The translations under genes were made by a program, and so were the position numbers. This document shows positions 588 through 5,981 of a stretch of DNA of 11,519 bases, in pieces. The stretch is taken from the sequence record MN496308.1, one strand, 5' to 3'. Positions within the stretch are counted from its first letter, which is position 1, and each line of letters begins with the position of its first letter. Below the pieces are notes generated by a model. The model was given only the letters and a program-made list of their open reading frames with translations. It was not told the DNA's origin and made no database searches.

Positions 588-1353
588 TGGAAGTTTGGAA
601 AAGGCAATGGAAGAAGCACTCAAGAACGCTAAAACGCTGGAAGAATTAGAACAGCTCTACAGACAGATACCACAACCCTCAAAGAAACTCTACAAAGCCT
701 ATGAGAAACGAAAATTTGAGTTAAAGTATGAGCAATATAAGAAGCTAAAAGAGGAACTAGCACAGAAGCGGAAGAAGCTAAAGAAAGAGAAAGTTGATAT
801 TCGTGTTAAGATAACAAAGAAATGGATAAACAGCAGACTGTTCACAGCAGAGCATTATGTCGCATTGCTTCAGCAAAGTAAAGATGGTCTACAGTTAATG
901 TTTCTCAGAAAGGTGAAACTTGTTGAGAATCAAGGCTATTTAATGATTGAAAGTAAGAAGCTCAGAAAGGCATGGGTTCTTGTCGGTGAGCCGGTCCTTC
1001 TTGAAAAGAGCAGAATCTTTGGGAAGAAATTTGTTGCAGTGCACTTTGTCTTGCCAGATTTTCCATATACTCTTGACATAGCTGTGGATGAAAAATTAAG
1101 GCAATTAGCAATCAAAGGAGTAAACGGCCCACAGATATTGCATAGTGTCGTCAGGACCAAGTTCTTTGAGGCACTGGCCCGTGTTGGGACAGGGCCAGAT
1201 TATATGATGCTTATTATTGGCGCAGTGATGGGAATAGGACTAGGAATGGCGATTGGCTTCGGCGTATCGCTATTCCACTTAACATCTACTCCACCCGCTC
1301 ATACTAACACAACAACCACAACCATGAATCCATTCCCTACGTCAACAAAATGA
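580..1353 (+). CDS. SSV1 B277-like core protein (257 aa)
   Basis: N-terminal charged coiled coil, C-terminal Gly-rich transmembrane helix and Thr-rich tail with an NTT sequon. Synteny. Confidence 0.85.
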   Translation: MSNGSLEKAMEEALKNAKTLEELEQLYRQIPQPSKKLYKAYEKRKFELKYEQYKKLKEELAQKRKKLKKEKVDIRVKITKKWINSRLFTAEHYVALLQQSKDGLQLMFLRKVKLVENQGYLMIESKKLRKAWVLVGEPVLLEKSRIFGKKFVAVHFVLPDFPYTLDIAVDEKLRQLAIKGVNGPQILHSVVRTKFFEALARVGTGPDYMMLIIGAVMGIGLGMAIGFGVSLFHLTSTPPAHTNTTTTTMNPFPTSTK

Positions 1354-1362
1354 GGTGAGACA

Positions 1363-1830
1363 ATGCCCAACAAAAAAGCATCCGGTAATGCTGTCGAAGA
1401 GCTAAAGAAAGAAAATGAAGAGCTAAGAAAGAAAATTGAGGAATTGGAAGCTTTGTTAAATGGACCAGAAGAGGAAGATGAGGAAATACAAGAAATCGAG
1501 AACCCTTACACAGTCACAAACCGAGCAATCTCAGAGTTAGTTGAGCCCAAAGACACTATGTTATATCTTTCGGGAAGTCAGATTAATCTGATTTTATCCG
1601 CTTACGAATTCGCCCGTTTACCCGTTTATTTTGGGGAAGAGCCTGTGCTAGAGTTGGCTGAGTTTGCGAGTAAACTGAAGTACTACTTAGTGAGTAAGGG
1701 CGGACGCGGTAGAAGGGATATACTCAGAGTGCTGAGAGTAAGCAGTGGCCAGACTAGGGAAAATGTCAATAAATCAATCTTTAGGCAACTACTACAAGGG
1801 GGGAAAGATTCAGATGTCGAAGAAGACTGA
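1363..1830 (+). CDS. SSV1 A154-like core protein (155 aa)
   Basis: GAGGTG SD. Coiled coil, acidic linker, ENPYTVTN and SKGGRGRRDILRVLR motifs. Directly upstream of the B251-like ATPase. Confidence 0.9.
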   Translation: MPNKKASGNAVEELKKENEELRKKIEELEALLNGPEEEDEEIQEIENPYTVTNRAISELVEPKDTMLYLSGSQINLILSAYEFARLPVYFGEEPVLELAEFASKLKYYLVSKGGRGRRDILRVLRVSSGQTRENVNKSIFRQLLQGGKDSDVEED

Positions 1831-2536
1831 AGAACAGAAAGCTGATGATTTACTATGGTTGGCACAAAAAATAGTGTCAGCATATAAGAATGTAGGATTT
1901 GTATCAGCAGTGATTTTCGGCAAACAAGGAAGTGGCAAAACAACATACGCATTTAAAGTAGCGAGAGACGTTTTCTACAAACTATATAATTTACAGACAA
2001 AGGATGAGGCATGGCAATATGTTAGGACCAGCTATTTCTTTGAATTGCCAGAAGCATTGATGAAGATACAGGATGCAATAGACAATGACTACCGCATTCC
2101 ATTGATAATCTTTGATGATGCGGGAATATGGCTTTCAAAATATGTGTGGTATGAGGACTACATGAAGGCGTTTTATAAAATATATGCACTCATACGAACT
2201 AGGGTGTCGGCTGTTATCTTCACTACACCCAGCCCAGAAGATATAGCATTCTTCTTAAGGGAAAAAGGATGGTACCAAATCAAGATTAGTATGATAAATA
2301 GAAAGGATATGATTGCGAGAGCAACTTTATACGCTAAAGATTTCGCAAGGAATACAAAGGGCGAAATTGTCACTCAGGTGAAGACAAAGGCGTTAGATAT
2401 GTTTAAGGTTGATATTCCAAATAATATATATGAGGAATATATGCAAAAGAGAAGAGAAACAGAAAGAAAATTACTCGCAGAGCTGAAACAAATACTATCA
2501 AGTTTTACGGAAAAGAACGCCGTTATTGAGGCTTGA
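1814..2536 (+). CDS. SSV1 B251-like P-loop ATPase (240 aa from ATG 1814)
   Basis: Walker [10 protein letters not shown] and Walker B IIFDD. The ORF-track start at 1745 lies deep inside the A154-like gene, so ATG 1814 is preferred. Confidence 0.92.
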
Positions 2537-3563
2537 AAACGGGGGTAGGCTCATTTATAATATTTTTCAACCACTCCGCGTATTTCTTGTAGTGTTCTTT
2601 TGCAACACCAAATAATGAAACATAATGTTGTGTAGCAACTCTTATCGGTTTTCTACCTTGAATAAAATCTATGACGTCTAGCGGAATACCTAATTGGGCC
2701 ATTTGAGTTGCGACAAATTTTCTTATGTATTTTATGCGCACAGCGTCTTTGTACGTTTTCTCAAATTTTGCAATTACACCGCGCGTTATATTTGTTTGTC
2801 GTAGTGGCGTTATGTGGAATAGATAAAAGGACCCTTTATAGCCTCTGGTCCAACTGATTGGATAATAACGAATCTCACCATCAGCGATATCACGCTCTGG
2901 CTCTCTTAATACTTTTAGTATTTCAATTAATCTAGCCCCTGACTCCAAAGCTAAGCGATAAACGAGATAAACGTTATCGCTATACTCTTTCGCAAGCAAC
3001 AATGTTTGCTTTATTTGTTCAATTGTAGGAACGTATAGGTCAGCCTTAGTTGATTTTACTTTAATGATCTTCAACACTTTATCAGCAAACTCCTCACTAA
3101 TTAAGCCACGTAATGCTAAGTATTTTGCAAATAGTCTGTACGCTTTCTGTGAATTTCTACTATCTGTATATTTGCGCCTTAACGCATTGATGTATTCTTT
3201 TACTGTTTCTTCAGATATTCTTCTTTTATTGATCAAATATTCAAAGAACCCGTTAATGTTGCCGTCTGTCGCATATTGGCGTAAATTGGCAACCACGCCA
3301 ATTTTACGCCGTTCTTCTTTTTCAGACGGGCCTCCCAAGCCGGTGATCCCGGGTTCAAATCCCGGCGGCCGCATAGTGGGGGATTCCCCCACACCCCCAT
3401 TTTCTTTCAATTTAATGTATGTTTCTACGACATCAGTTAAGGGACCTACATAAGTTTCCTTTAACTTACCGTTTATCGTTCTCAGTATATAAACATAATA
3501 CTTCCCTTTTCTTTCCCTTATGATTACATCACCATATTTATAACGCGTCTTATCTTTTGTCAT
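2523..3563 (-). CDS. int: SSV-type tyrosine integrase (D335 family, 346 aa), intact
   Basis: [15 protein letters not shown] and HYV catalytic motifs. The tRNA-derived MRPPGFEPG segment marks the internal attP. Confidence 0.97.
3329..3373 (+). other. attP: 3' half of tRNA-Gly(CCC), 45 bp, not a complete tRNA gene
   Basis: GGC-CTCCCAA-GCCGG anticodon arm (CCC at 3334-3336), T arm CCGGG-TTCAAAT-CCCGG, acceptor strand CGGCCGC plus discriminator A. No 5' half upstream. Confidence 0.92.
3376..3392. repeat. GC-rich inverted repeat adjacent to attP
   Basis: GTGGGGG-ATT-CCCCCAC, a perfect 7-bp stem. Confidence 0.85.
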
Positions 3564-4536: not shown

Positions 4537-5160
4537 TCAATTCACCAGTTCTTTTAATGCGGTAATTCGAGTCTCAAGGTCCTTCATTCTTGCTGGAGGT
4601 ATCAAATAACAGTTGAGGTCCTTTCTGAAATTATTCTTCTGAATTTGCATTAGTAAAGCCTCTAACTCATTAATCACATCCAATAATTTTGTTATATCGA
4701 TTTTTGCTTCAGCTTTTGCTTCGGCTCTGGATTCGCTTATATTAATATTTACAATGGGCTGAATTGATTCTTTTGCTAGCTCTAGCCCTAGCTCCCTTGA
4801 TACTCTGTTCAAGTCTTCTTTGTGGCCAGAAAGAGCGTAAATAAGGGTCTCAAGGCCTAGTTTCACAATCCTTTTCTTTCTAGGCGAAAGTGACATATAA
4901 CGCGCCTTTGCCACTGCACTAATTCTGAAAGCAATGAGCGATGTAACGCCCGTGAAATCCTCGTCGCTTTTTCCAATATTTTCTATATCTTTTTGTATAA
5001 GAGTGTTTGTGTTAGTGTTTGTAGGGTTGTTTGTTTGTGTTTGTTTGTTTGACGTTTGTCTAACAGTTTTTTCTGAACCCGCTTTTGTGTTTGTGTTTGT
5101 TAGTGTGTTTGTATTTTTGTAGTTTTGTGTGAAGAAATTGAAAGAATCACTGTCAGCCAT
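4537..5160 (-). CDS. Hypothetical protein (207 aa): Asn/Thr-rich N-terminus, central RHH-like segment, C-terminal coiled coil
   Basis: Long ORF overlapping its neighbours in the leftward operon. The IAFRIS...KKRIVK segment aligns with the B129-like N-terminus. Confidence 0.8.
   Translation of the reverse strand: MADSDSFNFFTQNYKNTNTLTNTNTKAGSEKTVRQTSNKQTQTNNPTNTNTNTLIQKDIENIGKSDEDFTGVTSLIAFRISAVAKARYMSLSPRKKRIVKLGLETLIYALSGHKEDLNRVSRELGLELAKESIQPIVNINISESRAEAKAEAKIDITKLLDVINELEALLMQIQKNNFRKDLNCYLIPPARMKDLETRITALKELVN
5002..5130. repeat. Strand-biased GT-rich short repeats (TTTGT / GTGTTTGT) within the 207-aa gene
   Basis: More than ten TTTGT units. The + strand is nearly G/T-only apart from a short central spacer. 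Confidence 0.85.
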
Positions 5161-5332
5161 CAATGATCCCCTTCAACTCTTCCTTGTGCCTTTCCAAATA
5201 CTCTTTGAGGGCCTCGTTTAGCAAATCCGTAAAAGTCTTCTTATGTTTGATCGAGAGGATTTTTCCTTTTAAAAAAAGATCTTCTTGTATGTATAATGTG
5301 GTTTTAACTTGTCTTACTTCTTGGGTGTTCAT
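5153..5332 (-). CDS. RHH DNA-binding protein (59 aa), paralog of the E73-like protein
   Basis: KTTLYI strand followed by two helices (FTDLLNEALKEYL). 19/44 ungapped identity to 5639-5869. ATG about 25 nt below a TATA box. Confidence 0.88.
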   Translation of the reverse strand: MNTQEVRQVKTTLYIQEDLFLKGKILSIKHKKTFTDLLNEALKEYLERHKEELKGIIDG

Positions 5333-5386
5333 CAATTTGTCAATCTATCAATCCAAGTATATAAACTTTTCTATCTATCAATCCGT
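5333..5386 (-). promoter_or_regulatory. T5-like early promoter with tandem GATTGATA operator-like repeats
   Basis: Minus strand ACGGATTGATAGATAG-AAAAGTTTATATA-CTTGGATTGATAGATTGACAAATTGATG. 5340-5374 is 34/35 identical (inverted) to 5935-5969. Confidence 0.85.
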
Positions 5387-5409: not shown

Positions 5410-5427
5410 AAAAAAGAAAACAAAAAA
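5410..5427 (-). terminator. Oligo-T terminator after the E73-like unit
   Basis: Minus strand TTTTTTGTTTTCTTTTTT, just downstream of the stop at 5445. Confidence 0.65.
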
Positions 5428-5444: not shown

Positions 5445-5642
5445 CTATCCATCTGTCTGTCCTTTTAGCCTGTTGAACCTTTCAAGTAATATTTTGAATG
5501 TCTCATACGCTTCTTTGGCCTCTTTAGAATCTAATATACCTAATATTTTCAAAAATTCAGCATATGGAATAGTAATAGCACCCCCACCTAACGCTAGTAA
5601 TGTTGTTAATAATTCCTTTATTTGATTATTATAGTCCTCTAT
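5445..5642 (-). CDS. Unannotated 65-codon ORF without a canonical start (IEDYNNQIKELL...KGQTDG)
   Basis: The frame is open 5669-5445, fills the gap between the E73-like stop and the terminator, and encodes a helical, protein-like sequence. No ATG/GTG/TTG before codon 31. Confidence 0.5.
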   Translation of the reverse strand: MEDYNNQIKELLTTLLALGGGAITIPYAEFLKILGILDSKEAKEAYETFKILLERFNRLKGQTDG

Positions 5643-5869
5643 TTTGAGGGGAAAAACCGCTTCCCAACCTCATCTATTTTTGGTTGGATCTCTTGAGGTA
5701 ATTCCTCTTTATGTGCAATTAACCATGTAACCACTGCTTCCTCAATTATGTCAGTCATATCTCTGTTCAGATATACAGATACTATTTTCAAAACGTAGTA
5801 AACATCTTCATCAAATGCTAATGTTGTTTTCTTCTTTTGGATCCTTGTCTCACTTTTAAATTCACTCAT
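5639..5869 (-). CDS. SSV-RH E73-like RHH (RH3) transcription regulator (76 aa)
   Basis: KKKTTLAFDEDVY..LK.VSVYLNRDMT.IIEEAVV.WL and C-terminal KRFFP match E73 as recalled. Confidence 0.93.
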   Translation of the reverse strand: MSEFKSETRIQKKKTTLAFDEDVYYVLKIVSVYLNRDMTDIIEEAVVTWLIAHKEELPQEIQPKIDEVGKRFFPSK

Positions 5870-5926: not shown

Positions 5927-5934
5927 CAACATAA

Positions 5935-5981
5935 ATAGAAAAGTTTATATATTTGGATTGATAGATTGATAGATAGAGGTG
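5935..5981 (+). promoter_or_regulatory. T6-like early promoter with tandem repeats and SD
   Basis: AAAAGTTTATATA, then GATTGATA-GATTGATA-GATAGA and GAGGTG. ATAGATAGAG (5969-5978) resembles the SSV1 F55 site ATAGATAGAGT. Confidence 0.85.

Follow-up and report, generated by a model that had tools for sequence, protein, structure and literature searches.

Behind the E73-like repressor gene of the Sulfolobus spindle-shaped virus SSV22 lies an open reading frame without a start codon, which, judged by its sequence matches, represents in this virus a gene conserved among fuselloviruses (SSV10 D60, SSV2 ORF72, phrog_21383), and which is under strong purifying selection. This ORF may complete a two-frame gene whose first half, in the zero frame, is E73. 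In the fuselloviruses that carry an E73/RH3 repressor, a helical domain of about 60 aa encoded in the +1 frame would then be made as a C-terminal extension of E73, and the locus would give rise to a short repressor (73-80 aa) as well as, in minor amounts, a long isoform of about 135 aa. Taken as a whole, with a slip and products that we infer, this explanation is put forward tentatively and stands, in our judgement, a little short of an even chance.

The window analyzed here, sequence record MN496308.1 (11,519 bp), is the complete genome of SSV22. Its E73-like gene (5869..5639, minus strand; annotated as QGA87296.1) encodes a 76-aa protein with an RH3 ribbon-helix-helix domain, which matches the Pfam family PF22180 (RH3_dom) over residues 9-71 with E = 2e-35 and 121 bits (gathering cut-off 27) and the Arc-like repressor profile phrog_11411 of the PHROG collection with E = 5e-40. 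The 3' end of the gene reads TTT TTC CCC TCA AAA TAG. The start-less ORF (5669..5445, minus) occupies the -1 frame of E73 and comprises 74 codons from stop to stop, with a TGA at 5672..5670 directly preceding the open frame and its own stop at 5447..5445. An earlier interpretation made from the letters of the genome, hereafter the sequence-only reading, had described such a -1 frame ORF with no ATG, GTG or TTG in its first 30 codons; this description is correct, the first of these codons being a TTG at codon 40. Two further elements to which it had drawn attention are also present, namely an ATA (5642..5640, minus) that overlaps the TAG stop of E73, and the heptamer T_TTC_CCC (5654..5648, minus), a candidate site of -1 tandem slippage that stands in X_XXY_YYZ register relative to the E73 frame, the -1 frame being open across it from 5669. 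The conserved body of the ORF extends from 5642 to 5448 (minus) and is modeled as three helices. Past the ORF stop, a series of T-runs (T6, T4, T6; 5427..5410, minus) likely acts as the archaeal oligo-T terminator of a short transcript of the F73/D60 type (T5').

On the opposite strand, the GenBank record contains a 50-aa CDS (QGA87295.1; 5473..5625, plus), which is probably a mis-call standing in for the start-less gene, since selection is seen in the minus-strand frame and SSV10 has no opposite-strand ORF of at least 30 aa here. Public records likewise place opposite-strand hypothetical proteins over this gene in SSV4 and SSV5 (ORF59; at 1217-1396, minus, of our contigs L003 and L010). None of these annotated ORFs of SSV22, SSV4 and SSV5 is conserved across SSVs, and all of them look like mis-calls.

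That the start-less ORF is not a chance frame is indicated by its match to phrog_21383, the SSV2 ORF72 / SSV10 D60 family (E = 1e-32, residues 5-61), by tblastn matches in 10 distinct SSV genomes, and by the purifying selection described below. For comparison, about 30 viral, proviral and metagenomic junctions were compiled. Contigs with E73 homologues, together with a scan of genome and metagenome contigs with a DNA pattern derived from the E73 gene, supplied some 20 junctions from metagenomes and one provirus of Acidianus ambivalens in addition to the SSV genomes. The single genome match of the DNA pattern, in a Chloroflexota MAG (L047), was rejected as a chance match inside a kinase-like ORF. 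Synteny is constant, the ORF lying directly behind an E73 homologue at all loci, and it is the +1 frame of the E73/RH3 gene at every junction save that of SSV22, where it is the -1 frame. The annotation of this region is irregular elsewhere too: in M.14.25.SSV (MK054210; 900-1137) the E73 homologue is unannotated and a minus-strand ORF at 950-1096 is annotated across it, and in the metagenome junction L029 the 88-aa protein P0011 predicted by the gene caller runs past the TGA stop of the domain.

The absence of a start codon is widespread. In nine lineage groups in all, the conserved body is preceded by neither ATG nor GTG nor TTG; these include SSV10 (SSV-L), SSV8 (SSV-RH), SSV4, SSV5 and SSV6, the A. 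ambivalens provirus, and the metagenome groups L019-24, L026-28, L029 and L045. In these lineages the +1 frame opens only two codons before a run of T, after a TAG or TAA that derives from an Ile or Leu codon of E73. At about half of the junctions an in-frame start is present upstream, as ATG in SSV21 and one large metagenome clade, as TTG in SSV2, SSV3 and M.14.25, and as GTG in L044/46. The check suggested in the sequence-only reading, a TBLASTN comparison of how homologues begin, gave a divided answer, with normal starts in SSV21 and others and none in the nine start-less groups. In a tree of 24 junctions, the deepest branches are start-less and at least four changes of state are required.

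Pairwise dN/dS values, calculated over the 50 codons downstream of the overlap, have a median of 0.16 in the frame of the ORF vs about 1.2 when the two shifted frames are read. Where both viruses of a pair are start-less, the values range from 0.06 to 0.5; SSV10 and SSV8, for example, show a dN/dS of 0.07 at a dS of 0.24, and the SSV22 ORF compared with start-less relatives gives 0.06-0.3. Purifying selection among start-less lineages suggests that the domain is made in viruses which offer no canonical start for it, and most relatives would apparently reach the ORF only by a slip of the ribosome from E73.

A candidate site for such a slip is found at the T-run itself. At every junction except that of SSV22, the E73 frame reads AAR CGN TTT TTT CNC, where CNC is CCC, CAC or CGC, and CGN TTT TTT CNC is invariant across these junctions while adjacent synonymous positions vary. 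Elsewhere, in other ORFs of at least 80 aa from four SSV genomes, TTT TTT is used for only 5 of 50 Phe-Phe pairs, and in none of these does a C follow. The tetranucleotide UUU_C is an established +1 shift site in influenza PA-X and in amalgaviruses, where tRNA-Phe in the P site leaves UUU and pairs again with UUC, to which it is better matched (PMC3498833, PMC5052127). By the same mechanism, the invariant UUU_UUU_C would let tRNA-Phe move in the P site from UUU onto UUC, which would join E73 to the domain in a product that reads ..KRFFPQNE... Slippage of RNA polymerase on the T-run would lead to the same protein and is an alternative to the ribosomal slip. The stretch between the T-run and the first conserved helix is variable in length and sequence and resembles a linker.

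The likeness to PA-X and the amalgaviruses (UCC_UUU_CGU, UUU_CGN) consists of a zero-frame UUU followed by C at which tRNA-Phe can re-pair to UUC, of a downstream ORF in the +1 frame without its own start, and of the dispensability of RNA structure; in the L019 group the site reads UUU_UUU_CGC. The result that no conserved RNA structure was found 3' of the +1 site across the junctions is compatible with this class of site. The fuselloviruses differ in being DNA viruses of a crenarchaeal host and in having CCC, CAC or CGC in the A site and UUU in the E site of the proposed shift. Among the A-site codons, CGC and CAC are rare (4.1 per 1000 each) and CCC is not (11.6 per 1000 in the ORFs of SSV22), which weakens an argument from a slow A site. 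The Arg codon before the T-run (5657-5659 in SSV22, and equivalents) is always CGN, in the forms CGG, CGA and CGT, and never AGA or AGG, AGR being the common choice for Arg and CGG, at 1.9 per 1000, the one used least for Arg in SSV22; this preference may belong to the context of the shift or be due to chance.

Other ways of crossing from E73 into the ORF were discarded. Readthrough of TAG from an ATG-ARA-TAG mini-frame is made unlikely by L019 and L027, which have two stops and no upstream ATG, and a frameshift at the stop codon of E73 by the lack of re-pairing potential and of a conserved context there. One metagenome contig, L034 (ERZ1669412), has one T fewer in the run and thereby encodes E73 and the domain in a single frame, as protein P0028. 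The addition of one T to L034 restores the usual GGT AGA TGA stop. As L034 is a singleton of 522 bp, covered 3.4x, and could carry a homopolymer error, the in-frame fusion lends weak support to a two-domain product. Positions 1-33 of the contig consist of adapter sequence, which we take to be that of the Nextera transposase, and the assembly is thus not fully adapter-trimmed. A search for longer natural homologues of E73 returned none among the 16 homologues of its length range, up to 133 aa.

The two-frame explanation thus draws on the constant +1 frame, the missing start, the start-less deep branches, selection, the invariance of the site, the precedent of UUU_C and the fusion in L034. Against it, the upstream starts at about half of the junctions mean that independent initiation may be the rule there, and the conservation of TTT_TTT_C is also expected if FFP is coded in both frames. 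These objections can be extended to the family as a whole: the domain would always be a separate gene, with the start-less lineages using some other route of initiation or carrying decaying copies, and TTT_TTT_C would be kept for the sake of Phe-Phe in both proteins. In keeping with this, ATG, TTG and GTG starts exist in the lineages named above, gene callers predict proteins of 70-76 aa, and dual coding would fix T6C3 if both frames must read FFP. Decay, however, is difficult to reconcile with dN/dS values far below 1 in nine start-less groups, also when these are compared among themselves; the two stops before the run in L019 and L027 make readthrough an improbable substitute route; and the Phe-Phe of the domain falls into its variable linker region. 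On this balance a gene that is always separate appears unlikely to us.

A more specific form of independent expression was suggested by the sequence-only reading, which considered re-initiation at the ATA that overlaps the E73 stop; translation from this ATA in SSV22, and from AUA in SSV10 D60, would produce a separate protein of about 65 aa. Indeed, D60 of SSV10 lacks a canonical start and is annotated with a non-canonical AUA at the equivalent place (PMC6080066), and the ATA/TAG overlap resembles coupled gene junctions. Yet the ATA of SSV22 is itself a product of a recent deletion, SSV21 reading AAT AAA GAG at this position. An ATA at the equivalent codon is restricted to SSV10, SSV8 and a few others, most start-less lineages have GTA (SSV4, SSV5, SSV6, L017, L027 and L029), and in the L019 group there is no counterpart. 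Moreover, all lineages keep the +1 frame open across the T-run, although a start located 3' of the run would have no need of this. Initiation at ATA is thus very unlikely, and the suggestion is not borne out by the relatives.

The SSV22 junction departs from that of all other viruses in ways that are best followed in its sister SSV21, with which it is 99.3% identical in the junction region. The SSV21 copy is an annotated gene of 76 aa in the +1 frame, and its ATG precedes the E73 stop by 35 nt. Relative to SSV21, SSV22 has lost 2 bp (TAAAG to TAG; 5639..5641, minus), a loss that displaces the ORF from the +1 into the -1 frame and from which the TAG stop and the ATA across it both arise. SSV22 also carries a T>C substitution at 5651 (minus), 11 bases from the deletion, which distinguishes it from SSV21 and all other relatives, is synonymous in E73, and turns T6C3 into T5C4. 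This substitution removes UUU_C and completes the heptamer U_UUC_CCC. SSV22 has consequently lost the features of the UUU_C class, its ORF being in -1 and its site reading TTT_TTC_C. All outgroups show the SSV21 state, and SSV22 is therefore the derived form. What is left of the +1 frame (5673..5629, minus) begins at the ATG of the SSV21 76-aa ORF and now ends after 14 codons; after the deletion, this ATG and any +1 slip reach only this dead-end frame. A recent loss of the start codon, which the sequence-only reading had mentioned as a possibility, is hence part of the story, in that the deletion separates the ATG from the ORF.

If the domain is still made in SSV22, it would be by a -1 tandem slip on T_TTC_CCC, with a protein of 141 aa as the product. 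The distribution of the mutations speaks for such a rescue. Outside one divergent block, the backbone of about 9.3 kb shows some 26 differences between SSV22 and SSV21, of which the 2-bp deletion is the only indel, and three of these differences (the deletion and two substitutions) crowd into 41 nt at the junction. Only two single substitutions could have given a perfect X_XXY_YYZ in the register of E73 and the displaced ORF, and T>C is one of them. A rough estimate of the probability of this coincidence is about 0.002 if the events were independent and about 0.02 if they formed one mutation cluster, which favors compensation and the 141-aa product. The divergent block itself (1170-3350) contains about 560 of 585 substitutions and 16 of 17 indels of SSV22 vs SSV21, the remainder of the genome being about 99.7% identical, and suggests a replacement by recombination upstream of and into the integrase gene.

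Several observations weigh against a -1 slip in SSV22. Heptamers with Y = C are atypical, and no stimulatory structure was found 3' of the heptamer, where 78 nt fold at -7.7 kcal/mol (z = 0.03 vs shuffles). T_TTC_CCC occurs at no other junction among the approximately 30 compared, SSV21 having T6C3 and a +1 ORF. The same observations, the missing downstream structure and the restriction of the heptamer to SSV22, would be expected if the deletion had simply knocked the gene out, leaving a fresh pseudogene in which T>C arose by coincidence or together with the deletion in a single clustered event. SSV21 retains an intact version with an ATG, and at about 0.3% divergence outside the recombinant block there was no time for decay, so that a dead frame would still look intact. 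A simple knockout would also be tolerated, given that transposon insertions in F73 or D60 leave SSV10 viable (PMC6080066). What a pseudogene leaves to chance is the crowding of the only backbone indel and two substitutions into 41 nt, and a T>C that happens to create exactly X_XXY_YYZ in register. We regard the pseudogene as a considerable possibility, though clearly below an even one. A sequencing or assembly error is a further explanation for the deletion, in which case the real SSV22 would have the SSV21 arrangement, with ATG and +1 frame. The deletion is indeed the only indel in a conserved backbone and lies in an A-rich stretch; the loss of 2 bp from TAAAG is, however, not a typical homopolymer error, and a real substitution lies 11 nt away. 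An error is highly improbable.

Returning to the rescue of the SSV22 ORF by a -1 slip, we consider its chance appreciable and not far below even. The stronger combined claim, that +1 frameshifting at UUU_UUU_C makes a long E73 throughout the family and that SSV22 is a natural switch of direction in which T>C compensated the deletion, is rather doubtful as a whole; its second part is supported by the clustering of the changes and by the register of T>C. The fusion of E73 to the ORF by a -1 shift, as proposed in the sequence-only reading, thus gains support from the relatives as far as fusion is concerned, whereas its direction does not carry over to the family, where +1 at TTT_TTT_C is the candidate, the -1 heptamer being confined to SSV22 and without downstream structure.

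The closest known precedent for the SSV22 arrangement is fucA1 of Saccharolobus solfataricus, whose -1 frameshifting at A_AAA_AAT is, by the account of a 2021 review, the sole case demonstrated in Archaea; among archaeal viruses the review lists only the tailed viruses of haloarchaea (PMC8211752). Both belong to the same host group, and fucA1 also has an X_XXY_YYZ heptamer in a short overlap of two ORFs with rare codons flanking it (PMC8211752); T_TTC_CCC of SSV22 shares this geometry and is immediately preceded by the rare codon CGG. In contrast to SSV22, with no structure, Y = C and a heptamer in one genome, fucA1 has a putative stem-loop and a heptamer that is conserved in its homologues. 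With regard to the organization of products, parallels can be drawn to dnaX tau/gamma, the phage tail chaperones G/GT and IS911 OrfAB, where one promoter and one start serve a major short product and a minor trans-frame product with a common N-terminal domain. The -1 sites of these systems have stimulators, and the part shared by the fusellovirus products would be a ribbon-helix-helix DNA-binding domain.

Within the family, SSV10 F73/D60 and SSV2 ORF79a/ORF72, on the T5' transcript, are orthologous pairs in the same promoter-to-terminator cassette as in SSV22. Goodman and Stedman reported F73 and D60 on a short T5' transcript, present in 7 of 11 fuselloviruses, and joint up-regulation of the homologues in SSV2 at a late stage of infection is also reported (PMC6080066). 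The published annotations of these pairs differ from the arrangement in SSV22 in relying on an AUA or TTG start, and the SSV22 ORF lies in the other frame. A full-text literature search for fuselloviruses and frameshifting found no paper that proposes recoding or fusion at the E73 junction.

The AlphaFold model of the ORF domain consists of three helices (pLDDT 76). Pfam returned only sub-threshold noise for it, Foldseek against the PDB gave no match at E <= 0.001, a wide VIA search only generic helical matches (Z <= 6.3), and a protein atlas search no usable match. E73 alone has been found to bind SSV-RH DNA non-specifically in vitro (PMC5569661), and we speculate that the extra domain of the long isoform could supply specificity or higher-order assembly. 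The cassette of E73 and the ORF is flanked by a 47-nt inverted repeat (5332-5378 and 5931-5977; 89% complementary), each arm of which carries a TATA-like box and GATAGAT/TTGATAGA repeats ahead of divergent genes starting at 5335 (minus) and 5987 (plus). These repeats resemble the reported F55 operator of SSV1, ATAGATAGAGT (PMC5569661), and by this likeness may be putative targets of E73-type proteins. Directly downstream of the cassette lies a second small ribbon-helix-helix gene (5153-5335, minus; 60 aa) with weak RH3 matches in relatives, which has its own copy of the repeat-bearing promoter and no start-less ORF behind it.

If the two-frame explanation is true, crenarchaeal viruses would have their first recoding event and Archaea only their second demonstrated one, and a conserved, simple UUU_C site in a genetically tractable family of Sulfolobus viruses would give a second testable archaeal system, of the +1 type, for which SSV21 and SSV22 offer a ready natural comparison of a +1 with a -1 arrangement. 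It would also explain the uneven annotation of a conserved gene, which has been given an AUA start, a TTG start, the wrong strand or no annotation at all. For the biology of the fuselloviruses, it would mean that E73, seemingly non-specific in vitro, has a longer natural form which has never been studied.
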